This document shows, piece after piece, positions 13,932-32,512 of a stretch of DNA of 64,000 nt (position 1 is the stretch's first letter; every line of letters starts with the position of its first letter). A program made the translations under genes and the position numbers. The DNA comes from Trichoplax adhaerens (taxonomy: Eukaryota; Animalia; Placozoa): NCBI RefSeq assembly GCF_000150275.1, contig NW_002060949.1:2415836-2479835 (forward strand). The letters are read 5' to 3'. Below the pieces are notes generated by a model that made no database searches, was not told the DNA's origin, and saw only the letters and a program-made list of their open reading frames with translations.

Positions 13932-16900
13932 ATGGATGATATTCACAAATGGCGATTTAATAGCGAGAGGACCGGGATAACATGGCTAATACTAGATTTG
14001 CTCGCTTGGACTTTATCTTTCTACACGTGTTTTCATTTAATATTGTTGACTTTTTATGCGCACAGAAGTTTTGTCATCTTTGGTAGGTACAATTATGTGC
14101 TCGTAGTGCAATGGTTCATAAGCAATCGCTTTTTAATGTTCTAGCAAATCTTATGCGCTGTTATTCATCAATAAGAAAATACGTTATATTAGCATTCAAT
14201 TTTAATGATTGTTTAGTAGATTTTACTACATTTATAGGTGTATTTCTATATTATTATGCTAACGTTAAAAATGACGATAACAATATAAACTTGGATATTT
14301 ATATGGATCGCTAGTGTAGGCTAGCGGTATTGCTAGATTGTTATAAGTTGTATCGTTACATCTACCTAATGCCTATCATGTACAATCTTTTACGACCTGG
14401 GTTAATTTGATCGATTCAATTTGTAATTCTTCAATATCTTCCTAAGTAGAATATGAGCTACAGTAGATTACATTATTACTATCATTATTCCTTCAACATT
14501 TTGTCACATTGACCCCATTGTCCGACTAGTGTGTTAATTTTCTACGTATTGCGCTTCAAAAATGACATTATGTAAATAGTAATATACGTATTATTTTATC
14601 TACGATCCATTACTGTTTGCATGCTTTGTACTGTGTGCATGACAGCTTTCAGACATACAGGTATAAACTTCTAAGTATACATCTGATTCAATTGCACGAC
14701 TGTTGATGTATACGACATTCGTTAGCTGCATCTATCACTTTTATAAGATAATGCTACATTACTTATAGAACGTCTAGTAGTGATGTTGGTAAGTATAGAC
14801 TTATTGTACTAATTGTTACTCTCCTGTTTATACTCCGGTCTGTAGGATATGCCTTAGTTATGCTTTTATTGTTATTATCGTTGATACATGTCTCACTGTC
14901 GGATCCGGGCTGTCTACCACCGCCAACTACTGATGAAATTGCGGCTGACCCAAGTAAGCTAATATACCAGTAATACATTGATATCGCAGCATAGTAACAA
15001 ATAGTGTTTATGTCCTGTATTCCCAATAATATCATTTCATTGTAATTCTGGTGTTGTACAGTATGTGGATAAGGGCTTTATCATCATAGTATAAAAACCG
15101 TTACCAAGCGCCAAGTGTATACTGACCAATCAAACGTATTTACAACACAATACAGCCTATTAGATATCATTTCCTCAATAATTAACTTTCGTTAGTAAGA
15201 ATATTTCTCGAGCATGAAGGGACTATAACAGGCTAATTATATGTATACTGTTATAACTGTTAAGCTGTTAAAATTACTTTTACGAGCTACACTTTTATCT
15301 ACCTGCGCCCAGAGACGTTAGCATTCGATTACTGCCAGTTGTGCAAGGTGAGAAAACCGCTAAGGAGTCATCACTGCAGGGCGTGTAAGCGTTGCTTTCG
15401 TAAGCTGGATCATCATTGCAAATTGTAAGTCAGCATGCTAATGAACGTCAAACTTAAGACATTTAGTGCTATGTTAAAATCTATTGTTATTATTCGATTG
15501 TAAAAATTCTTTCTTACTTGTATCTATGTATGCAATTCTAAACATGACCATTTTATACATTATAATGAATATTCCATTCAAAGTATCAATAACTGCATTG
15601 GAGAAGACAATCAGGGCTTTTTTATAACTTTCTTGGTTTATTGTATTGTCGCTTCTGCTATAAGCGGTGCAATATGCGTATGCAGGTTATATTATATAGA
15701 TCCGAATCAATGCACCAATTGTGGCTATATGGTAAGTAAATCAAATATCACTTATGATTCATAGTAACTTGGAATAGTGTACGTTAAATATATACATACT
15801 AAGAACGAAAGGATTCTATCCGTGATATAACATGCATAAATTATTCCGTTTAACTCGTTACGGAATAATTCTCATTTTTCTTGTCGATAGTCGAAGAATA
15901 ACTGGATTGTTTATCTCGTTACCGCCCTATCGGGAGCAGTTTGGCTATTTACCAGCATGTTATTACTCAATCAAACATTTAATCTGATGTTGGTAGGTTT
16001 TTACGTAGTAGTTTTATCATCACTTCAGCTGTTAAGATATATAAAAGTAGGTAAGATAATGAAATTAATGTTAGTTATTAGTCAGTAAAAATTTGAATTT
16101 CAGTTTGCTTCGATACTATACATGATGTATGAACACCATCTGTAATGATGACAAGATCTATTCTTTATTTATTACCTTATTAGATGATTTAAATGTATTA
16201 CAGTACCACTTTAATCTTAGTCGACGTGTATGCGTATAACGAACTTTTTTACATATTTATAACACTTTATTATATTTGTTCTCGCTATTTGTTAAATTCC
16301 ATTGTTAAATCTGTAGTTTGCTAATTTATTATGACACATTTTAACGTTCGATTTAGTCTGCCGTTAAACATCCTGATTTAATAGTAATTATATAATTGTT
16401 GATTATTACTTGAAAATTTTTATATCTAATAATGAGTTTGTCATATAAATATAAAATGATATAAAACGGATTATTATTGCAATATTCCACATACGATACA
16501 TTGTATTTACAGTATATATCGTACGCATCTTTTATTAGTAGTAAATTGTACTGTATACTTTGTATTCATCTTGTAGCCTTCAATTTCATTTCTTGTGTCC
16601 AATTTTTTCCATTTCTTGACGCCTCTTACTGTACTTGTTATATTATGAGATATTTTTCTAGACATACTTTATTCTAGAAATAGTTCGGCATTTAAAAATT
16701 TCAATTTTCGTTCAACTACTATTGTTTATTAAACATCTGTCACCTCTTCATGACTTTTTCCTAATTGTTTATTTAATCTATATATAAGAACAAGACTACA
16801 GCAGAAAGGATTAAAGCTCGCCGAGCGGGCAAAGGAGGCCACAACAATTATTATTCCTCCAGGTACTCTTATTAATAATGACAGTATTGTCGCATCTATT

Positions 16901-19900
16901 TATGGTATCAGTTTATTGATTTTTAATATTGTGTGCTGTGCATTTCCTATATGGAATAACTGTGGTATCAAACTCTGTATCTCATTACGATACTAGAACG
17001 AGGGTATAATTGAAAGAAATTGCAATTTTATGATTTGTTATCCATTTCCCAGACTGACAAATTATATAATGTTTTTTTGTTGATTTTACTGATGATGGTA
17101 TCAAATATTATGAAAACTTTGGACGAGTAACTTTAACAGCAGCTATGAGCCGATAATTGCAGACCTTACAGATATTTCTATCACAATTGATGGCAATTCT
17201 GATATAGCTACATTTTGATTATCTTACATAAGGAGAAATGTAGCAGCATTTAATCAACAATATTATTGTTCATGGCTAGATAATCTTAGCAAAAAGTAGC
17301 GAATATGGTACGTCTTACAGATTGTAAAACTCTCGATAAGATGAAGTATATTCATCTCTAATTAGGTCTAATAATCAGATTTTGGTATCGAGACAGACTA
17401 TAACTAGACTATGGAGATCGCAAGTCGTCTGACTTTTGACTTGACCTAATATCGTATATCTTAGCAAATTGGTTTATTAATAACGTGGCTTATTGACATT
17501 AATTGAGGGATTAATATGTAGCGGTTGACAAAGTTGAGACGTGTGCCGTCAATGTGAAAAAACAAGGAAGCTGTTATTAATTATTTGTACTGCAGTATAA
17601 TGATATCATGATGATGTTGATTATGAGACATTAGTAGTACCTGGGATCCTGAAAAGACGTATTATTGGAGGCTTTCACGTCTTTTCGAGTAAAAATTAAA
17701 AAATTATCGTGAATGGGAAGTGATGAACCAATACTCTTATATAAGCTTATACAGTATTATATACTGGTATTTGATATACATGTTGACAGATAGTTACACA
17801 GTGAATGAAGTATTACTAGTTTCTTTAATAAGTGATCTGTAAATTAATGATCAAGATTGACTAGATCTATGAAAATCTATTGTTATGATCGTTATAGTAC
17901 AATACGTAGCTTTTACAAAGTAATCATTTAAATGACGATTTTATACGGTATATTTTTTTTATTTTTACCGACTAAATATCATTATCTTAGGTTCTCTCGA
18001 ATCACGAAGACTACATTATTAACAGTGTTATTACTTACGGTTGCGTAATGAAATAAAAGAAAAATTATGACAAAACTTTTGAAGTAAACAGTCTGATTCA
18101 CAGTAGACTATACTATCTTTGATATCAGTTTAATAAACAATAAGAAATAATGCAAGTATCAGTCAATATATACCACATATGCACTCGTATGAAAACATTA
18201 CCGGTATCGCCTGACCATGCTTATATAACAATCATAATTACATACGACAGAATTAATCATTCCGTTGTTACCGTGCGTGTTAATGAAATTTTTAACGGTA
18301 GGTGATATTGGTGTGCATTAGCAGGAGTATGATATGCAATAATTGCGGGTTATGATAAGCAATGTCTTGCTATGGTATTCTTTCTGTTCTTTTTCAATTA
18401 CTAATACGTCTACTTATGAAACTTTTGGAGGTATTAGCAAGGAGGCGCTAGGTGTATTAATACGGTATATGATACGATATCGTAATGATAGAAGATTGTA
18501 GTAGGCAATATCAGACTAGAGATACAGTTAAATGGGAGTTTATTTATTATATTTAGTATATGAGCGTTTGCCATCATGTATATTATTCATACCAAAGTTA
18601 TATTAATGAATTAGCAAGATAATACCAACAGTTGGGATAGCGGCTATATCCAAGCAAACATGCTATATGCGTATAAGGACAAATTATATCCGAGTAGTCT
18701 GCAGCTTTCCCTGTTAGGTAAACATTTAAATCCAATTTTTAATTCGATGTACAAATATTATGCCAGCTACAGACTATACGGATTTATTTATTTCTTATTT
18801 GCTCTTGCGATATATTAGAATATAATCATTTTACGTATTTGGCAAATGTCAAGGTTGGATGTCGAGAATGTTTAGTCTTTGTTTATTTAAATGATCAGAA
18901 ATATCCCCAAATTGGGGTATATTTGCTTAGTGGAAACAATAACCTCAGAATTAATATTTCTATCTCATGAGATAATTATATATAGTTCTAACGTAACCCA
19001 CATCAGCTGTCATCAATGTGATAACGTAATGTCTAGAAATCTCTTCTTATTTACTTTTCTGATATTCTCATGTCAACATAACATGAAATTAATAAAATGT
19101 TGTCGTTATTTCGTGTATAGTACATAGTACGTGGAAATAGTAATGCATATGTATTTGTTCTGTAATATGCTGTATATTATGTAATAGCTTGAAGAAAAAA
19201 ATCGATAATAATAACTGTGAATTTCCATGATCGCGAGAAACAAACAAATATACATGATGAAAGATAAATAGTATATCGTATTATGGAGCCAATAGTCTCT
19301 ATTTATACCTGATAAGTATTTATTCATCATCCAGATTCTTTATTTAGTTATAATAATTGATGGATATTACCTACTATGCAGTGAGGTATAATTCCTAAGG
19401 GTAAATGTTATAGTTTATGTTTATTCGACTTGGTATTGGCTATTTTTTAATTCAACGAATTCATGGTATTTTTCAACATGATATGATGATAGCTTACTAT
19501 TCGTGAATAACATCTTGAATATTTAGTCTTTATACTTATTAATTTGCTGAATTTCCTTCTTCCACTTCGTTGAATCTTTTCTTGGAAATAGACCGGTTTA
19601 GATTACTGTTGCTAGTCTAGCCGCGTATCTATGTGTGATTACAATTATAGGATGGCATAACTGAATATGACATATAGTGCGAGTATGATGTATTATACAG
19701 TTGCACATCAGATATAATTTTAGTTGAATGGGATAAAATTAATTATTTAGACGGCTATGTACTCATAAATTATTACCTAGTGAAGTTGGACAGGAGCTGT
19801 ATAATTATAAGCATTTAACGTTAAAGGGTTAATAAATAAAACTGCTCGATATAACCGCTAAATATTATTTGGATTTAAGATAACATTGTTAATCAATAAC

Positions 19901-22900
19901 ATAATCTACCAGATCTAATTTCGTCAAGCATATGCTATGGGGTATTCTGCAAGCTGGCAATTATAAATCTGGTACAACAGCATTAAGTGATTTAGCTGAG
20001 ATCTTTTAAAGTATGACTATTTTCATAATACAGATACTATAACTTAACGCGTGGTTAGGAGATTACGACTTATAGAATAGAGTATAACACTGTATTATGA
20101 CTTGATTATATATTATCGCATTCTGGATATTCTGCAGAAGCAATTTTGATGTCTCTTCATCTTAAAGGGCAATTGTTGTTGGATTTAAGGCAACATTGTT
20201 GATAAATAACTTTATCTGCGCATATATTATTATCAGGTGTATCCCATCTACTTTTTATGGGCTTGTAATTATCTTCATCCATCTCATAGCTGCATAAATT
20301 AAGATAATTAAACTGACATAAATTAAGAGTAAGAATGGAAGTCTTATAGAATTAACGTTATTGCGCTCTACACATTTCTGTTGAAATAGCTTTGATGTCT
20401 CCTCGTATTGAAGGCAATTGAATCCCAATAGGCCGTAGACAATGTTTGTGTACGTTGTATACGGTGTTTGTTGACTTATTTTTTTTACAACAATCCATCT
20501 TGTTTATTGTAGTACCGTTCACTAAGGCTGACAGCTAGATTAAACAGGATCACAGCGTAATCACTCGTCAGTCTCTTAATTATAATTTATATTAATTATC
20601 AATATTAATATGAATGTTGACGTTCACACTTGATAGTCTAGCTAGCGTCTAGAATGCACTTGCCTTTATAAGGCGCTACATCGGATTGTAGCAACTTACG
20701 GCTTTTCCTTGGGCAATTCTGCAAATATTTAAAGAAATTGGCATCCTTTTTGTTTTATAATTTTACCACTGCCCTATTCAAATGCTATTGGTGACTGTAA
20801 TCATGGCATTATAAAAAAAGGAAAGAGCAGATCCCATGGGGTATATTATTGCGCTAATATTTTATTCCTTTGTGATTTAATTGCTATCGCTATTTCCGAC
20901 AGATATTCTACCCGTACAAAGATAATATATTACATTGTAAAGATTTTTGCACAAAGACATAGCACTTCCTCTTTACATTGATAGAAACTAGAAATCTAAT
21001 AATATAGACGTAAAACTCATGAATTATTTTCAAGCAATAAAATGTCAAGCAGGATTGTCCTATTCAATATGTGCACTGCGTCTTATTATTTTTACTTTTA
21101 TAATTCCCTTGGATATGATTTTGACTCTCAGTACCTCAAATTGACAATTATTCCATCATGCAATACTGCACAGAAGCAATATCCTCTTAATGTCTAGAAA
21201 TACAATATGGAACATCAGAAATTCTGTAGTACATTTACATAAGCTTCAAATCATTCTAAAGGATTACTTATCAATGGCACAAACGTTAAAATCATGATAC
21301 CGGGCGATGTAATATGAACAACACTTACTTGTATACTTATCTATATATCACTTTTATTTGAAGCGTGATAATTTAATCTACCTACAGTGTTTTCATCATT
21401 ATATGCCTTGGTGCTTTGCTAGTGTACAAGAATAGTTACTAAAATTTATACGGTACTATTTTTATTTAATTATTTATAGCCGTTAGGGTTATTACGTATT
21501 GGAGGTTACCAGGTCATTAGGTTTGTGAAAGCATAACAATAATATGACCGTTATAGGGGTGTGATAGCTAGCAGATGCAACCTTTCTGACATTCTACCTT
21601 CTCTGCATGGAGTAGCTATAATATAATTACCAATTATTTAAAAATTAATTGTATTAATTATCATTATGTGTTATTAAGCTCTTCGTATAGTACCATTAAT
21701 CTAGTCTAAACAGTGTCCAGTACTGATGCAGACGTAAATATGGCTCTCTATTTTTCGCACTAATTTCATAATAGTTACCATTTTACGTAAGATGGCTAAA
21801 ATTTAATAGTCAGTCACAGACTTATTGATTTTCACTGTTAATATTGAAATTGAAATTAATTGCAATCACACCTACATTGAATTAATACCGAAAAATGTAG
21901 GATACTGCAATGTCTACACCCTAATAGTATTCCAGACAGCACCGTATTGTAAAACGCCGACAATTTGCAATGTGTAAAATAGATTTTAATTTTTTTAATT
22001 TCTTCAACAAACACAATCTTAATTAACGATTAGATTACCCTATAGGGAAAATTAAAGCTATTGTTAATGAAAAACTTTCGATATATTTTTAGCATTGTTT
22101 GTAAAATTTCGATTTTTTTGACAGCTTGTTTCAGTAACAAGAGAAAGTTTTTTTAACTTATTACAGTATTATCGTTATCAAGTATATAGCCTCTCACTAT
22201 ATTTTTATAATAGCTAGAATCTCATAATATGAGATGAATAAGCCACCGAACAGTATTATTAAATAATATGATTTGCGCCTTTCATTATGCATTCGTATTT
22301 TGTATTAAAGAGCATTTCACTGGTGCAGACAAATTAAACAAACTACGAGAAAAAATTTCAATCATGATTTTTGACCGACAATGATAATTTTCCAACATCA
22401 TTTTTATGTTATTGAAGTTCTTATTACGTGTTGTTATATGATTATGTTTTTCATTGAAAATTTGTAAAAAACTAGTATAATCTAGTGTAAAAGATTTCAA
22501 CGTGAGTTAAAATAGGTCTAGAGAATGGTATTTCTTGAGTATGGTATAAGAATAAACAGTGACTTGAAATATCTTTAACGAATATCTCCTAAGATCTGTT
22601 GGTAAATAGGATAAGTTTTGGAATACTACGATGAGCGCTGCACTGTCTGTTTTACAGGGTCTTAAAACTATATTGTAATCCGACATCAGGACACTATTGT
22701 AGTGCTAATATTTGCTATTATATCACGTAAGTCCGTTAGAATTTTTATAACTTATTTTCTAATGATAATACGAGGAATAATACGTGGGATTCTATGAGAA
22801 GTAATAATTGCTTCTATCCGTCAATTTTTATTCTGCTTAAAGGCAATATAAGATCGTCATATTTTGTATCATTATATGCTGATTTTACGTTGAACCTTTA

Positions 22901-25900
22901 GCCGTGATATTTTCTCAGTGAGTGCGGGATCAGTAATACCAAATCACAATTATTCCTATCATGCAGTATGTAGTGATTGATATTGCTCACTGCACCACCT
23001 TTTCTTCTACAGTTTGCATAATAATTCAGTTTGTATGGTAAGAATTAAAATGGGCTTAGGTAGTATGTCGTATTCTTAAGTCTTTTAGACATTGCAAATG
23101 ATATATTAGAGCAGAAAAACAAATTTTAAATAAAGGATAAACTGATGTACTCGACAGAAAATGCGGTTATCACGAACTCAAATCTTTCATTACTACCGTA
23201 TGCGTACTAGAAAATGGACGATTAATCTGCAATTAATATTACTGTAATTATGCGCATAATTTACCTTCGATAATATCTTGTCTATTTATCATGGATATTA
23301 TGTTGTGTTATGGGTATTTTCGTTTTTATTACAAAAATCTACAATTTTTTGGCTAGCCAACTTGATGACATTGGATAGATGATGAAATCTTAACAGGAAA
23401 AAAAATTGGATACTGACTGCTTTGTATAGAGAAAGTTTAGTATAATATATCAATGTGTATCAACATATTGTATAATCATGGAATTTATAATCTAATTTGC
23501 TTTTGGGCTAAATTCCGGTGGTTCTGATGAATTTGATAGCAGTAGTAATAAGTCTACACCCTTTTGTGCACCTGTAATGGGCTAGATTTGAAATGGAAAG
23601 ACCATAACACCGTTATGTATAATCAATTTTGGATATTGTAGCCTGAGAGTAATCATTTTTGTTTGTATATTGACCGGCACTTAAAATGTTAGCCATCTGA
23701 ACTCTCTGCAAGCTGCGGCGGGTAAACATGGAAGTTGGATGTGAAAACGTCTTTTGTTTTAATCATGTACACTAAGAATTTGCTACGTCGTCGAGTGGGC
23801 AATGACCGTAATAATTATTATGATAATAATTACGGCATTGATCGGCGTACCCAGACAGATTGGCGCCGCCAATCCTATCGTTTGTCCAATGATTAACTAT
23901 TTTGCTAATAATTATACTGTAGTAGCCGTTAAGCCGATAATACCCAAATTAATAATGAAATTAACAAACAACTGCCTGAATTCACTTATTTAAGTGTGTA
24001 GTCAGATGTCTTCAAGTTTAGTTGTTGCTACTTTAGCTGCAATACGCATAAATGATAGAATAATCGTAGTTTTGGTTAGGATTTCACTAATCTTGGCACT
24101 GGTCATTTCTTGAGAATTATATATTTATTTCTCCTACATTCTGCTCCAGCCAGAAGTGTGATAGTGGCATCAACATTCATCGGGTAGGTGATGCTTTACA
24201 TCGATTCAATTTGTCAGCTAAGAGGAGTTTGTTCGCAGCTAATCCATTTTATTCATTAATATTTACGGTAGAGTACTTAATAGCATATGACAGCAAAAAA
24301 AATTGTACACAATAAAAAATTAATGCTAATACTTTAATACTCTCGAACTGCAGTTGTCATCAAATGTTGCATAATTACCTGCTGTGTATTAGTAGGGCAG
24401 CTTTACTTCGTCTTCAACACGATATTCATTCAATTTTATGATAGCTGTATCGAATTGATACATATGTTGCACACTGTTGGATACCTTTTGCTACGAAACA
24501 TGTGCAAATGTAGCGCAATCAATATTCGATTGCATTACATAAAATATACAATCTACTGCATTCATACATGTCGGCATTATATCGTAACATTTAAAGTACT
24601 AAGTGAACGCATGAACCGTTAATAATTTGTACTACTATTTTTAATGGTATTTGGAGAAGTAATACTGGCATATTTTAATAGATGTACCTGTATAAATTTA
24701 AACATATACCAAAAAATATTTTTTTATTATTTTTTAGTGATCTGAAATTAAAAATTTGAATTACCAGAATCAAGATCCTAACTGGCTTGTTCATATCTAG
24801 ATATTCTATATAACATACAAACATTCACATACGCTCACATAGACATCTCGTGTAAAATATCCCGACAGAGAATTGTTTGTAAAATCCAGTTAAAATAGAT
24901 TTTATTCCTTCAATCTATTGGAATTTAAACGAATGGTTAATAGTAGTAATTATCACAATTATTTAGCATCACGCTGCGAGTTAACTGACAATATGAAAGT
25001 TTCCTTCCCTTCGCCAGCTACAACAGAGAAAGCTAATGCGACAGTGATGACTAATATTGAGTCAGGGGATAATGATATCGCTGATAGCCATTGCAATAAC
25101 ATCCATCATGACGACGTTGATAATATTACTCGTCCAAATCATCCATACAAAGTATTGATCGCGAAAGCTATCTTGAGTAATTGCGATAGGAAATTAGTTT
25201 TAGCTGATATTATAGACTACATCGCTAAAAATTATCCTTATTATAAAGTGGAAGATAGCAGTTGGAAAAATAGCATTCGCCATAGTTTATCACTCAACGA
25301 TTGCTTTATTAAAGTTGGTCGCAGTAATCGAGGCAAAAGCAATTACTGGTCTATTCACCCATTGGTCTTTAAAGATTTTGAGGAAGGCAATTTCCATAAA
25401 CGACATCCGAAACAGAGACTATCACAAAAATCGAGAAATTTTTTAGAAGCTCACTATAAGACTGGTGATAGAATGATAAATGTTTCTCCTCGGCGTATGC
25501 ACAATAACCCTCTCTGCTCAACACCGCCATTTGTTACCGCTAATCCAATTCCACCTAATCGTACCGGCATAAATGCTTCTTCGACGGGCTATCAATTCTT
25601 ACCTAACATGGAAAACATTTGCAATAATTATCCAGCCTATCAGTTACCTACACCTTTAAACCATTTCGCTGTTAATAACTTTGTCCACGGTGAACGAGAT
25701 AACTTATACGTTACCAATTCCAATTACCGTCATCATCACAACCAACCTTTATTAAAGGTTGGCAATGAAGGGTTTCTACGGGATTGCCAGATGCCCACAG
25801 CCAATATGATGACTTCGTCGGTTACGCCATCTTGTTATAACTACTGCTACTCCAATAGTGCTTATCCTCAGTACCATGTTGCTTAATTTACGACAATACT

Positions 25901-26567
25901 TGATCTCTATTTTGCCATACATATTATCAACTTAAAGTGACTTGATTATAAATTGATTCGATATATGTACTCAGAACTTTATTTCTAACAGCAACCTCTA
26001 TAATTTTATCACCAGTATGATGTAATATCTCAAGAAATATGTATTTTTAGATTGCGTGTATGATAATTACAAAAAAAAATAGATTTATTTATGGTTGTCA
26101 ATTTGGATGAAGTTGTCAATTAAAGGATTATTGCCTATTTTAATGTTGCGTGAAATTGATTGATTTCTTTTCAATGGTTTTTTCTCTCTACTTTCCTTGC
26201 TCATGTATTTTTAGATATTGTAATGGTGTTAACCTATATTGATTTAATACTACGATATGCGTATTGCGTTTAATATCTATTTCTGTTTTATCATTACGAT
26301 ACACTCTTTATAGTTTAACAAAATCCATGTCAGAGTTCATCAGTATATTGCTATAAATTTGATCTTATATTCCTTTATTCTTTCAGAGTAGCTCGTCCTA
26401 TTTGTGATATCCTTCGCGATACTTTCGGAGACGGATATTTTATCTGGTGGCTTGTGCCATTGCGACGTCGAATTGCTAAAGTAGAGCTATATTATAGCGA
26501 TGATTTGTATCAACAAGAAAATGATAGTACTAGTGATTTAAATGAGAAAGATAAAAATGTTCATTAA
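13932..26567 (+). CDS. ZDHHC21: DHHC palmitoyltransferase, ZDHHC21-like, about 291 aa, 7 exons: 13932-14082, 14846-14953, 15313-15424, 15584-15731, 15891-15992, 16789-16862, 26387-26567
   Basis: The spliced translation contains a DPG motif (SLSDPGCLP), the Cys-rich domain [44 protein letters not shown], four hydrophobic segments, TTxE (NKTTAE) and a C-terminal [18 protein letters not shown]. Phases are consistent. The subfamily call rests on recalled similarity (GEDN after NNCxG; FG...W..P.R tail). Confidence 0.85.
24933..25886 (+). CDS. FoxQ2: Forkhead transcription factor, FoxQ2-like, single coding exon, 317 aa from the first ATG (the ORF track starts at an upstream TTG)
   Basis: Forkhead domain [16 protein letters not shown]...KLVLADI...[33 protein letters not shown]...DFEEGNF. 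KLVLxDI, CFIKxGRS, YWxIHP and DFxxGxF are FoxQ2-type features. A TATA-like TATATAA lies near 24806. Confidence 0.85.
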   Translation: MVNSSNYHNYLASRCELTDNMKVSFPSPATTEKANATVMTNIESGDNDIADSHCNNIHHDDVDNITRPNHPYKVLIAKAILSNCDRKLVLADIIDYIAKNYPYYKVEDSSWKNSIRHSLSLNDCFIKVGRSNRGKSNYWSIHPLVFKDFEEGNFHKRHPKQRLSQKSRNFLEAHYKTGDRMINVSPRRMHNNPLCSTPPFVTANPIPPNRTGINASSTGYQFLPNMENICNNYPAYQLPTPLNHFAVNNFVHGERDNLYVTNSNYRHHHNQPLLKVGNEGFLRDCQMPTANMMTSSVTPSCYNYCYSNSAYPQYHVA

Positions 26568-29094
26568 TGTACAATGCGGCGATTTTTGCAAAAGGTCATT
26601 GGGAAGTTGAAAGTATCATAGATATTAATAATTCTAATGTAATAATTATAATAAACTCTTTCCAAACGTAAACTTCTCATTTCTTCGTGTCCCAGAAAGT
26701 GTGTCAATCTACGCTGGTATAATATTGGATATGATAAGGAAGGTTATCGATTATAAAGCTACGGTAAACAATAATATTAATCTGAGATGAGATTACAATA
26801 TATAATCTCTAGATTTGCTTCGTATAGTCATTAGACTACTTTATCGCTATATTTACACGTCAATGTCACTTTCGAGTAATGACTATGAAATAAAATACGC
26901 ATTTTGTTCGAAAATTTTGTCTTAGCTTGCAAGTCTCAAATATCGCTGGCTTTTTAGTAGTGCGATAAGTGGACAAGCATTCGTTAGTTTATTAATGTTA
27001 TGCTTATGTGCTATGACTTGAGTCTTGAATTTAAAACGTAATTCAGCGCTCATATTATGGGTTTATACTCGTATGATAACTTTACATGGATTTGGAGTTG
27101 TCTGAAAGCTGTGTAAAATCGCTAGACAAGTAGTAGCCACTGATTAGAATACGTTAGCTATCCTTATGCGTTGTAGATAAAATTTTGAATATAGAATACA
27201 ATCCTGTGTAAAGTGTACGAGTTAATATGCGTATTATAGCTGTACTGTACATACGAGATATTTAAAGTTATATGGACGGCTGTATGAGTTGCTAATGGTA
27301 GCATAACATGATGAGTAGGGATTGCATGCTTAAAAATTTTTACCCCAGGTACCTGCTTACTGATGAGTTTCCTTTAGGATTGTATACTTTCGGTATACTC
27401 TGGAACGAACTAATTACTACCTGTTTGTATTTGCCATTCAGTCATGTATGAGTTAGTGTGTGTTATGTTAATTATTAGGGTAGCTAGGGCATTAAAATTT
27501 AAAGTAGAATTTTCGACTAAAAACATTTTACTTCAAGCATGATACGGAAAATCGTCAATATGAGGCCAACAGGGACAGTTCTCAGCTTAGAGCACAATCT
27601 TATTCGCGTACACCTCTATCATAGATAGTAGGATTTAGATCTACTTGCTACGCATTTTTGCGTATCGATATTGGAATATAGCAGCATGGACATTGATTTC
27701 AATGTCGTATAACAGATACATCAAATGACTCATGATTGCGAATTCTTATTAACCTAGTGCCATACTCATCTTCTCTTATATTTAATAAGCCGAAAGTTTG
27801 TAATTGTGAATACTGACAAATAAGACCTTGAAATTAGCGCAATTAAAAATTGTCTATGCCGATTAAAACGTGAAACTTAAGCACTGTAATTGTGAATACA
27901 GCAGTGTTGTTAAAACTCCTCCAAATGTGTCGTATACTTGCTTGCCTGAGTTTATAGATATAGTGGAAACAGTACCATAGTCGTCATACGTGTAAGTACC
28001 TGTAATAAATGACATTTTGGCTGCCTATACCGTAATTAGATACCTGTGCAGAGTAAACTAAAGCATGCCGTCACAATTGTAACAATCTAATAGGGAAATT
28101 CGTTTAATTTTGAAATATTTAAGAGTGGACATCTTAGTCCACCGTTAGATAAAGTTTCGCTGATATTTTAAAATAGGTATTAGCTGACATTATATTTTTG
28201 TAATAACTACAAAAATGAATATGAAAGGACTGCTATTCTTTCATATATTATAAGTGAAAAATCAATAGCGAATCGGAGATGCAGCGCAATATTGTTTTAT
28301 TTTGTTTTCCATGGAAATTTAGCGTACACTATTGCTCAAATATGATCAGCATTTACAGGAAAGTGATACTATTTAAAACAAGTGAGATTATTACAGCATA
28401 CCACTTGATAAGAAAATATTACATAATATTAGACCAGTGTTACAATATGCTGTCATACACTGTATTATTAAATATAGCCGTATTAACAAGGTTAATGCTA
28501 CCCAAGCGCATCCGTGCAATATAATTATTTATTTGTTGAATCGGATAAAATTTACAATAATTATAACCATTCGTACGTACACTGTGTCTGGTGTATTAAT
28601 CGGCTACTCTACAGAAGTGCAAAAAAGTAATATTTAGGCTAGTTTTTGCTAGTACACATACACTTATTCATCAGCATGACCTGAAAAACTACTTATATAT
28701 ATACATGGCTTAACGACAGTAATTGCTAAGTATAATCTATTAGATTTGATATCGAATATCAAAATTAAAAAAATTTTAAAGAATCTAAACTATTTTGAGT
28801 CGGCTTCGTTTATGATGACTGTAAACTGGTGAAAACTCTCATAATATTAGCTTGGTTGAAGGCTTATTGAGTCTTCTCTAATATTAAAATATGTTATATG
28901 ATGGGCAATTAATTACAATGTTTAGTTTTACTGTCGTAATTACTATATATCTTAGCTATACAATGCATGCGTTAGGGCAAATATAAATCTCCGGTAGAAA
29001 ATTTGAGAATTTTGAATTAGTAATTAATTCCATTCCTTAACATAGTGTCATAATGATTACAGTTGTACAATATACATGAGTAGTTTTCGTTACA

Positions 29095-31710
29095 CTATTT
29101 GACACTAAAACTTTCGCCACAACCACAGGTACCAGTAATATTAGGGTTGTTAAATACAAAACCGCTATCCAAGATATTTGAAGTGTAGTCCATTTCCGTA
29201 CCAAGTATGGTTAATTGAGCCTTAGAGTCGATGTAAATCTTGACACCTAGAAGTATAGCAACATAATTAACATACAGATGGTACACTATGCATTATACTT
29301 TTTTACTACTATGAGGAATTAATGCTTAGTGATAATGAAGTGAAGCAGATATCAAATACGCTATAAATTTTAAACAACCACTCGTTTGAAGAAGATGATC
29401 AATTATTACATCGTATAATCTGAGGTAACATTGCTTGATAAATATTATGTACATGCAGCTAAATTAGAAGGCAATGATAAGTGGCTATATATGCGTGGTT
29501 ATAATTTACGAGAGTTGGAAAAATTATCTCTGAGTACAATATCGCTAAGTATTTACCGTCTTGGCTGACTTCTTCGTCAAATTTCTTCTTTGTGTCTGCA
29601 TATTCAAGAGTATATTGAAGACCATTGCAGCCACGAGCGCGAACACCAATTCGCAACGCTGCCTGTAAACCAATGTAGTTATAGGTATAATTAATTGATT
29701 GATAGATTCAGACAATTTTGTTTCATGCTGTTAACGATTTTGAAGCGTAAACTAAAAATGCCTCTAATGTAGTCATCAAGTGCAGTATGGGTTAGCATTC
29801 TTTGGAGTTTCAAAAGATTCATGTTCATGTAAGTAGATTTAGTAGCAGCATGGACACTGAGCGAATAATTTGAAGTATATGATTACTACTTTATTATTAA
29901 TCAATAATGTACATTTTATATTTATTTGCGATTGTAGATAAGTAATTTACTAAAAAACACAATTCTAAAGCAATATCTGCCAGGATAACAAGGTGTAGCA
30001 AGCAAGTACGATCATTTGAGATTGCATTATTTGGCTGATAATTATCATAAGAAATAGTACTGTACTATAGTGTATCAAAGTAAAGACTCTTGTAACCTGA
30101 GATGTTTGATTGGCTTAAAATGAGTAGAAAGTATTTTATCTAGTATAATTGATAATTAAGAATACTCATTAGGACATCGCTGTATTAGCGTTGTAGACGT
30201 CCGGCTAATTTATATTTGAATTATAATATAGCAAGGAATAATGACTTTTTAACCCAATTCTATTTCCGTAAAACAGTATGAAGGCAAAAGGGAGCTTATT
30301 AATATTACAGACTAGCACAGGATTATAAATAGAACACTTACCATAGCAGGATTATTATTCATCAGTTCCATGACTTTATCGACAGCGGCCCGTGTCTGTA
30401 ATTCCAAAGCAAAACATAGCTACCGTTAATATAATGAAATGACGAGTGTCAGATTAAGCTATCTAGTTAGCTGCTCCATTGAATATAAGTTTAGTAGCAG
30501 TAGACTATCCAGTATCAAGTGATTACAAGCGGATAGTGGGTGCATATTTTGATAGCTTTATTACTGTATTTCTAAATTAGTGATAACCCTGTATATCTAA
30601 ATTTGTGTTATACAGTCGGCATAATTCATTATAATAGAGTACGCTGTAATTATATCTAGAAGGCATCACTAGTCTCGAGAGTACTGTATAGCCTACAGTG
30701 GTTTAGTGGGTACAGTATAGGATAAAATCATTGCCATCCAAGTTACGATTTTTGAATTGATCATCATTGTTGTATTTCCGCTGAGTCGAGTAACTGTCTA
30801 TACGCTGTAGTATAGGGATGAAATACCAACTGTGCTCGTATCTTTGAATAGAAATTTGAATTATAGTGATACCACAGCGTCAAAATGAAATGGTGGATGA
30901 TGGTCTATTTCCTCTTCAAGAGTGAATCCATATTTGAAAATTTACTTGAGTGTAGTCAGAGACTACAAAGAAGAAAATGTCAGCAGTCTCTGATCAAGTC
31001 GTAATTAGGGATTGCACCTGGGTACTCGAGTAATTTAAATGGTGAATAGTAATGTCTTTTATTTATTTAAAATGATACTGTACATTTACCAACACCAACC
31101 AATCCTATCTAATTCTGGATTGGTAAATTAGCGTAAGTCAGTCTTGAAATGATCGCTATTTTATATCATAGATGACTGTAACGAGTCGATGAAAAATAGA
31201 CATTGCAATTGGATGTTGTCATGATGAAAATGTAGCTAGTGTACAGTACACCACAGTATCATGTATCAGATTGACTTTTCCGACCGACATTGATCATTCA
31301 TCCTACCAGTACAGTAGAATAGTGAAGAAATGATGCAAGACCAAAGTGGAATACTCCTTCTCTTCGAGTCGAGTGGCGATGATCAAGAGTGAAATAGATG
31401 ATTGATTCTAAAGTTTGACAGTAGCTATATCGAAAGTGAAGTTGATACGAAGGCTAAAAAATAGGAATCAAGATTTTGGCCAGTTAGTAGAGTCTCCTTG
31501 GGCAATTTCCGCTAGTGTCAAAACATTCCATTGGAGTGACAGTGTGACCATTGGACTCGACTCCACTCATTCTGGCTCTTCTATCAATTCAATCTACTGT
31601 ACAGTCTACACAGTTGAACATTGTTCAAAGCTTACCAGAGTTAAAGCTGCTCTTCTTGGGATAGTATTCCTTTGGCGTACAACTCGAATGCTTGCTCGTA
31701 GTGTTGCCAT
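29095..31710 (-). CDS. ISCA1: Mitochondrial iron-sulfur cluster assembly protein IscA1, 128 aa, exons 31636-31710, 30342-30395, 29557-29662, 29095-29246
   Basis: Arg-rich presequence MATLRASIRVVRQRNTIPRRAALTLT, then IGVRARGCNGLQYTLEY, LGTEMDY and FVFNNPNITGTCGCGESF. Phases are consistent. Confidence 0.95.
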
Positions 31711-32512
31711 TCGCTTTTTTTTTTTTGCCAGATAGAACCTTAACTTAATCAATTCTGCTTTCGACCATTACTCGGTTTCAACGAGAGTCACGTACGCCGT
31801 ATCGGATCAAGGGATAATAACTGTTCTCAAGCCCAAACCAGTACAGTAGTATGTACTGTACGTCCCATGGAATAACGCAACTTTACACTGTAGACTGAGT
31901 ACTGTAGGTGGAGTTGTACTGTATCAACAGGAATGATGTCAGTCTGTACCGGTCTGTTAAAGCACTTTTGTTCTGGTTTGACCGGTTTTAGCCATGATGC
32001 TGAGCTGGCGACTGGAGTAGAATGCGGCCCATTGAATCAAGCGTTTTCTATACGGTACACCATTTCTCCGAGTAGTGAGCAAGTAAGCAGTATATGCCAC
32101 TTGAATAGAATTGATCCGAGACATTTCTGTCAATAATAATTTGCTGAATGTCTCAAGTGATCTAGTTATTATTATTATGATTCATCTGATGTGAGATGTT
32201 GATGAATTAAGCCGATTTAGTCCAGTGTACGATTGGTTATTGGCTGTAAAACAGTCTACAGTACAGTATATTTTGGAGGAACTAGACTTCACTATTGTAA
32301 AGTAGAGTACAGTACTGTACATACTCTACAGTGCGCTGTACTTGGCATGATATCATTACTGAGCAAGTAATTGCATAAAGTAGACACTATATCATTGTCA
32401 GTTACGAATATTTGGATTCAATAAAGAAGATATTCCATTTTTTAGATCATGGCAGCGGTGTAACATAATGCGTTCAATTCTTTTTTGTATGCCATTTTTG
32501 AATCAGTAAACA

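Follow-up and report, generated by a model that had tools for sequence, protein, structure and literature searches.

We describe a 64,000-nucleotide stretch of DNA from the placozoan Trichoplax adhaerens (NCBI RefSeq assembly GCF_000150275.1, contig NW_002060949.1, positions 2,415,836 to 2,479,835 of the forward strand; hereafter the window, in which position 1 is the first letter) and two genes within it, one encoding a DHHC protein S-acyltransferase and the other a forkhead (Fox) protein. The forkhead gene and the conserved DNA upstream of it very probably lie on the same strand as the DHHC gene, within its last intron of 9.5 kb. We consider this nested model very likely because the DHHC gene is the sole plausible partner of a coding exon, exon 7, that is found downstream of the forkhead gene. 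According to the model, a seven-exon DHHC gene of 291 or 318 codons would extend from 13932 to 26567 on the plus strand. Exons 1–6 would encode the TTxE motif and four transmembrane segments along with a cysteine-rich domain of the zinc-binding DHHC type, and exon 7, 9.5 kb further on, would contribute a C-terminal segment of the form LRD-x-FG...W..P-L and the stop codon, followed by a conserved AATAAA. The last intron would hold an independent same-strand forkhead gene, with conserved non-coding blocks upstream and a promoter-like region of its own, whose independence we infer. To yield the full enzyme, a polymerase coming from the DHHC promoter would have to traverse the Fox unit in full, and splicing would have to connect 16862 to 26387, a junction that we infer from phase, motif, and conservation. 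The nesting had been proposed in an earlier note on this DNA, and it now gains indirect support from separate lines of evidence, namely a conserved terminal exon without a start codon, a phase match, a DHHC C-terminal motif, the lack of any other conserved coding partner, and a downstream neighbor on the minus strand. The coordinates of all features are collected in Table 1.

To compare exon 7 across placozoans, we used contigs of two other lineages from Logan and ENA assemblies, one represented by L001 and L029 and the other by L027 and L028; the lineages are ~85% identical to each other at the DNA level. Collinearity with the window extends from ~20 kb (L001) to ~34 kb (L027). The contigs are too short to reach exons 1–6, and the cross-lineage evidence covers the region from ~20 kb onward only. 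Judged from this comparison, exon 7 is a conserved coding exon from the 3' end of a plus-strand gene, since its frame, acceptor, and stop codon are conserved, it contains no ATG, and it is present in a single copy in the genome (105.6 Mb searched, in 1414 contigs). The acceptor (tattctttcag/A at 26386/26387, the slash within the letters marking the splice site), the open frame, and the stop codon (TAA at 26565–26567 in the window) occupy the corresponding place in all three lineages, and the insertions and deletions that separate the lineages within the exon are multiples of three only. Over the first 44 codons, 10 codons differ from L001 by synonymous changes only and 11 by replacement changes, corresponding to a non-synonymous rate (dN) of 0.14, a synonymous rate (dS) of 0.68, and a dN/dS of ~0.2 (NG86). 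By codon position, the differences number 8, 5, and 13, and thus favor third positions; the acidic low-complexity tail of the exon diverges fast. The earlier note had described an in-phase exon behind tttcag/A, about 500 bp after the Fox stop codon, and direct reading of the window agrees: the exon begins 500 bp beyond that stop, and ~480–550 bp beyond it in the two other lineages. As the open reading frame (ORF) contains no ATG in any of the three lineages, exon 7 needs an upstream splice partner.

The surroundings of the exon are less well kept. Some 450 bp before the 3' splice region barely align between lineages, conservation resumes at 26345, and the sequence beyond the block that contains the AATAAA barely aligns either. 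This block, GCAATAAATTCTTTCCAAAC, is located about 85–150 nt past the exon 7 stop codon in the two other lineages, and its AATAAA likely provides the host gene, and possibly Fox too, with a poly(A) signal. The stretch from 16.9 to 29 kb has 595 AG sites, three of which are preceded by a pyrimidine tract and followed by at least 35 in-phase codons, and exon 7 is the only one of the three to be conserved as coding sequence in other placozoans.

The window is AT-rich eukaryotic DNA without any N, and six plus-strand exons at 13.9–16.9 kb, all within 3 kb, encode a DHHC protein S-acyltransferase. Homology searches for this gene were run exon by exon. Exons 3 and 4 each exceed the curated cut-off of the Pfam family PF01529 (28.7 bits) and jointly reach 68.3 bits in frame in the genome search, and the sequence matches of exon 4 in the PDB are zebrafish DHHC15, yeast Erf2, and human DHHC20. 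The series HHC-x2-C-x2-C-x4-DHHC can be read directly in exon 3, and the zinc-binding and catalytic pattern is intact across exons 3 and 4 (Cx2Cx9HCx2Cx2Cx4DHHCx5Cx4Nx3F). The TTxE motif is present as TTAE in exon 6, after the fourth transmembrane segment. Throughout exons 1–6, every donor is GT, every acceptor is AG, and every phase closes; for example, the phase-1 donor of exon 2 (CCAA/GTAAGC) matches exon 3. The introns before the last measure 682 or 763, 359, 159, 159, and 796 bp, so the statement in the earlier note that they are all under 0.8 kb holds, with 796 bp as the largest. Two further readings of that note are confirmed by the letters themselves: exon 6 ends in phase 2 at 16862 with TCC AG/gtact, and reading through this end gives S-R-Y-S-Y-TAA, with the stop codon at 16873–16875 (placed at about 16874 in the note), four codons into the intron.

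Two observations on this gene stand apart from the question of its last exon. Exons 1 and 2 can be joined as 14082^14846 or as 14086^14769 with the frame equally kept, the difference being 27 codons that encode a loop and the second transmembrane segment; the two joins could be alternative splicing, or one of them could be false. In addition, the catalytic core at 15413–15600 reads DHHCKF-INNC, as opposed to the near-universal DHHCPW-xNNC, and a lysine after DHHC is found in the paralogue L011 as well.

Several features link exon 7 to exon 6. The phases fit: the codon opened by two bases (AG) at the end of exon 6 is completed by the first base of exon 7. Exons 1–6 end right after TTxE, without the segment that follows this motif in DHHC paralogues, and exon 7 has a candidate for such a segment, with a motif like that of DHHC C-termini, LRD-x-FG...W..P-L. 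In the same region, paralogues from the same genome read NLAVVFGKYWWICFINPL, FKEVFGGSFSLLWFSPF, and FMEVFGKKKWLWCLPVW; one paralogous DHHC locus of this genome shows 100% identity to TRIADDRAFT_53375 of Trichoplax adhaerens. Similarly, a profile of 19 ZDHHC22-like C-termini, with the consensus lrdVFGkyWylafllPl, aligns to the exon 7 segment. The pattern FG.{4,8}W.{1,4}P has a single match, in exon 7, when the whole window is translated in six frames, with 0.7 matches expected, and the motif evidence amounts to p = 0.03 or so once the choice of the exon by its motif is allowed for. The paralogue L024 (ZDHHC3/7-like) has the same layout: its TTxE exon is short, a phase-2 intron follows, and FG..W..P is found in the last exon. 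Joining exon 6 directly to exon 7 gives a spacer of 31 residues between TTxE and FG, compared with 21–23 in the paralogues, and because the spacer is already this long, no further exon is required between the two.

Other candidate partners for exon 7 were not apparent. Between 20 kb and Fox, we found no further conserved coding block, and the blocks that are conserved there show no preferred frame in tblastx. With the exception of Fox, the ORFs in the intron contain no Pfam domain. The C-terminus and stop codon of Fox are conserved across lineages. Next downstream of exon 7 comes an ISCA-like gene, encoded on the minus strand, and the order Fox, exon 7, ISCA is kept in all three lineages. Misassembly of the region, which the earlier note had raised as a way in which the arrangement could be spurious, is unlikely because the window contains no N and foreign contigs run collinear with it between ~20 and 34 kb.

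A number of points count against the join. The case for homology between exon 7 and DHHC C-termini is built on a short motif, and the motif test is partly circular in that the earlier note chose this exon by FG...W..P. Out of 2907 six-frame ORFs in the window, the profile of ZDHHC22-like C-termini places exon 7 first, yet with an E-value of 0.33, and a profile built from the C-termini of three paralogues ranks it ninth (E 3.6). Five residues before FG, in what would be the C-terminal PaCCT region (N-x4-FG ... W..P), exon 7 carries Ile where the paralogues usually have Asn. GTACTC, the donor of exon 6, is the weakest in the DHHC gene, and the segment between 16.9 and 20 kb has no comparator sequence. 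A search of 1.84 billion protein representatives with an exon 7 profile returned one spurious repeat protein only; exon 7, alone or as a profile, had no DHHC match in the PDB and no usable match in the Atlas; and a word search with its ORF among proteins of 45–143 aa gave no candidate. No transcript, model based on expressed sequence tags, or annotated protein with the 16862^26387 junction was present in the sets searched. An alignment of a full-length paralogue with the two exon 7 peptides, run against proteins of 105–332 aa, retrieved only ZDHHC22-like orthologues of the paralogue, and two scans of Joint Genome Institute (JGI) metagenomes, with exon 4 and with Fox, yielded no further placozoan sequence.

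Within the nested model, we asked where the forkhead transcript would end. In none of the three lineages do the 500–560 nt from the Fox stop codon to exon 7 contain an AATAAA. ATTAAA variants in this gap lie at a different position in each lineage (at 26119 in the window), and the first conserved AATAAA, at 26650, is located past exon 7. Fox and the DHHC gene could accordingly share one 3' end at this signal, with exon 7 included in the Fox 3' untranslated region (UTR), a reading that refines the nested model and does not replace it. We regard it as possible, though short of an even chance: at this base composition, an AATAAA-free stretch of ~500 nt is expected by chance about half the time, the three lineages are not independent, and variant signals such as the ATTAAA at 26119 could serve. 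With a shared poly(A) site, there would be no internal one for the host transcript to bypass, and the AATAAA-free gap fits the expectation in the earlier note that the host either bypasses the Fox 3' end or shares it. Taken one step further, the two genes might be interlocked, with the enhancers and promoter of Fox in the last intron of the enzyme, the Fox mRNA ending at the enzyme's poly(A) site, and the pair held together since before the placozoan genera split. We put this forward tentatively and think it rather unlikely. If true, transcription at one gene would affect its partner, whether by occlusion of a promoter, by splicing competing with cleavage, or by chimeric transcripts that join exon 6 to Fox exons.

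Alternatively, the DHHC gene could end at exon 6 by intron retention (...YYSSRYSY-stop), and exon 7 could belong to another transcript, either as an alternative 3' exon of Fox or as part of a gene with unseen exons between 16.9 and 20 kb. The stop codon four codons into the intron, the weak donor of exon 6, and the failure to find an exon 7 protein in the public sets searched would all agree with such an arrangement. We nevertheless consider it improbable. The C-terminal motif of exon 7 resembles that of DHHC enzymes, its phase agrees with that of exon 6, Fox has a conserved C-terminus and stop codon of its own, and no other coding content was seen in the intron. Past exon 6, a poly(A)-like hexamer first occurs after 830 nt, which mildly disfavors a major intron-retaining isoform. 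Furthermore, the segment after TTxE reportedly packs against the transmembrane domain in DHHC20, so a truncated enzyme is unlikely as the main product. It is more improbable still that exon 7 only looks like coding sequence and is instead a conserved element of a regulatory or other non-coding kind, or else a relic exon: it is indeed short and its tail evolves rapidly, but the frame is open with in-frame insertions and deletions only in three lineages, the third-position bias and the low dN/dS are those described above, and the acceptor, stop codon, and poly(A) signal are all conserved.

The guest in the nested model is a forkhead gene by its match to PF00250 (Table 1). Its protein is 84–85% identical in the two other placozoan lineages, with an invariant forkhead domain. 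Compared with the other Fox genes of the genome, the domain is divergent, scoring 103 bits against Pfam where the others score 125–139. Its PDB matches are spread over FoxD3, FoxL2, FoxK1, FoxC2, and FoxA, with no family standing out, and its neighbors in the Atlas are generic. Its best relatives in the databases are flatworm and sauropsid Fox proteins of the "orphan" sort, whose automatic names disagree with one another, and the name Q2 is displayed on none of the 64 relatives listed. Like members of the FoxQ2 and FoxQD families, the gene encodes a clade-I-type forkhead protein in a single coding exon; it differs from them in its divergent domain. The name FoxQ2, given to it in the earlier note, is a tentative one. 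C-terminal to the forkhead domain, an invariant stretch, HFAVNNFVH, bears some resemblance to an EH-I-like motif and could be one. Flatworm genes formerly assigned to FoxQ2 are now placed in FoxQD (PMC7859237), and a T. adhaerens gene named FoxQ2 is reported to be expressed centrally (PMC13128682); no link between that gene and this locus was found.

The Fox ORF itself may be absent from the public protein set. An exact look-up of the translations from its first three ATGs found no record in the protein collection, and no protein at least 90% identical to it was found in the protein collections searched, in which other T. adhaerens proteins are present. In the L001 lineage, the Fox product called on L029 (positions 334–1434) is 366 aa long as opposed to 320 aa, with DNA that is 99.9% identical; the difference is an upstream in-frame extension.

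Table 1 Features of the DHHC and forkhead genes in the window (a slash within a sequence marks a splice site)
Feature	Position	Strand	Description
DHHC exon 1	13932–14086, alternative end 14082	+	ATG at 13932 is the first ATG of the ORF; transmembrane segment 1
DHHC exon 1 donors	G/GTAGGT after 14082 or AG/GTACAA after 14086	+	Either pairing with exon 2 is in frame
DHHC exon 2	14769–14953, alternative start 14846	+	Transmembrane segment 2, DPG motif; direct reading
DHHC exon 3	15313–15424	+	Cysteine-rich domain to DHHCK; Pfam PF01529 2.7e-11, 44.1 bits, profile positions 6–37
DHHC exon 4	15584–15731	+	Third transmembrane segment; PF01529 3.4e-07, 30.8 bits, profile positions 39–89
DHHC exon 5	15891–15992	+	Fourth transmembrane segment, hydrophobic stretch read directly; acceptor and donor phase 0
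DHHC exon 6	16789–16862	+	TTAE (TTxE motif); phase-2 donor TCC AG/GTACTC
Proposed last DHHC intron	16863–26386	+	9524 bp, as delimited by exon 6 and proposed exon 7; would hold Fox and conserved upstream blocks
Distal conserved non-coding block	20465–20547	.	83% identity to another placozoan lineage, blastn E 8e-16
Weaker conserved non-coding blocks	21614–21673, 23226–23328	.	Cross-lineage comparison (L001, L028)
Small conserved non-coding block	22013–22056	.	Cross-lineage comparison (L001, L028)
Conserved Fox upstream region	23596–24325	+	68–73% identity over ~730 bp to two lineages; GC-richer cores
Candidate Fox 5' UTR intron	24184–24737	+	554 nt; conserved donor, conserved pyrimidine tract and AG
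Forkhead ORF	24933–25886	+	317 aa, single coding exon; Pfam PF00250 E 7.9e-29, 100.1 bits, residues 67–148
Conserved 3' splice region of proposed last intron	26345–26386	+	CATATTGCTATA(A/G)ATTT ... ATATTCCT-TATTCTTTCAG; three-lineage alignment
Proposed DHHC exon 7	26387–26567	+	59 whole codons and stop; in-phase ORF behind strong acceptor, no ATG
AATAAA	26650–26655	+	83 nt past exon 7 stop, within conserved GCAATAAATTCTTTCCAAAC-like block; kept in three lineages

We then considered what else the proposed last intron contains. Its first 3.5 kb are unique in the genome, and inflation of this part by transposons was therefore rejected. The intron includes one short tandem repeat, and searches of it gave no Rfam match or structured RNA. 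Conserved non-coding blocks are distributed upstream of Fox; the flanks of the distal block do not align, and it shows no preferred frame in tblastx. Closer to the gene, a three-way alignment of the upstream region at 23596–24325 reveals cores of 77–82% identity, and the region contains GTAAACA (23723–23729), which resembles a forkhead site, as well as CCAAT at 23886 and TATTTAA near 23988. A donor-like GG/GTAGGT is found at 24183/24184 and a conserved pyrimidine tract with AG at 24736/24737. This upstream region is a candidate for the Fox promoter together with a non-coding first exon, as suggested by its conservation and motifs. An in-phase ORF behind an AG at 24150 was tried and set aside as an exon candidate; it sits in a block with a 1-nt insertion or deletion between lineages. 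As a separate observation, the exon 6 donor at 16862 could also pair with the acceptor of the candidate second Fox exon (24738). Such a chimera would read S-D-L-K-L-K-I-stop and would place the Fox ORF downstream on a transcript driven by the DHHC promoter.

Beyond exon 7, an ISCA/HesB-type iron-sulfur assembly gene (...FVFNNPNITGTCGCGESFSV) occupies 29098–31711 on the minus strand, so that it and exon 7 are convergent. In both L027 and L028, the exons of this gene are conserved and keep their collinear order.

In cnidarians and bilaterians, the aboral or anterior pole, which lies opposite Wnt, is marked by factors of the FoxQ2 type, and the conserved blocks upstream of Fox are for this reason enhancer candidates. 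The earlier note had likened the locus to a genomic regulatory block and had suggested looking for the same microsynteny in bilaterians. The conserved non-coding blocks upstream of Fox speak for this idea. On the other side, two spot checks, in Echinococcus granulosus and Trachemys scripta, found no DHHC gene within 10 kb of the Fox relatives, genes whose orthology to this one is uncertain.

If the model is correct, two gene models would be corrected or completed in a reference early-branching animal, including an enzyme that needs an exon 9.5 kb away. The locus would also offer a compact and tractable case of host transcription and splicing across a same-strand developmental gene, and a case for asking whether constraints of the regulatory-block kind already act in a 100-Mb placozoan genome. 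Since nested genes and bystander genes are well known, the value of the finding is local rather than conceptual, and its significance would rise only with a shared 3' end or deep microsynteny.

Among DHHC enzymes, the host gene resembles the ZDHHC3/7/21 group in its four hydrophobic segments, intact Cys/His pattern, and TTxE and, with exon 7 included, in its C-terminal FG...W..P and predicted size (291–318 aa). After DHHC it reads NNC-I-GE-D-NQ, as do two other T. adhaerens paralogues; we take NNC-x-GE-x-NQ to be a signature of the ZDHHC3/7/21 group, and the tentative description "ZDHHC21-like" comes from this signature and from size. The gene departs from the group in having DHHCKF for the usual DHHCPW, and from the DHHC paralogues in a TTxE–FG spacer that is ~10 residues longer and in the Ile that replaces Asn before FG.

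Nested protein-coding genes are familiar in animals, for example F8A and F8B in intron 22 of human F8 and many cases in Drosophila, and in flies and mammals, guests on the strand of their host are rarer than those on the opposite one. The Fox/DHHC pair would be like these cases in that a complete guest with its own promoter sits in a host intron, one far longer than the neighboring introns. It would differ in that the guest is on the strand of the host, is a developmental transcription factor, carries several kilobases of conserved upstream DNA, and lies only 500 bp before the last coding exon of the host with no canonical poly(A) signal between them. Genomic regulatory blocks, in which developmental regulators keep microsynteny with bystander genes, are said to have been described by Kikuta et al. 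in 2007 and Irimia et al. in 2012. The locus appears to fit this idea at a miniature scale: conserved non-coding blocks, which presumably serve Fox, perhaps as enhancers, lie within the transcription unit of an unrelated enzyme and would thereby tie the two genes together. Unlike those blocks, which span hundreds of kilobases, the locus is smaller than 10 kb, and its conservation, seen among placozoan lineages only, covers the part that begins ~4.5 kb before Fox and ends with exon 7. The arrangement adds a further case to phenomena already known, nesting on the same strand combined with a bystander-type layout.

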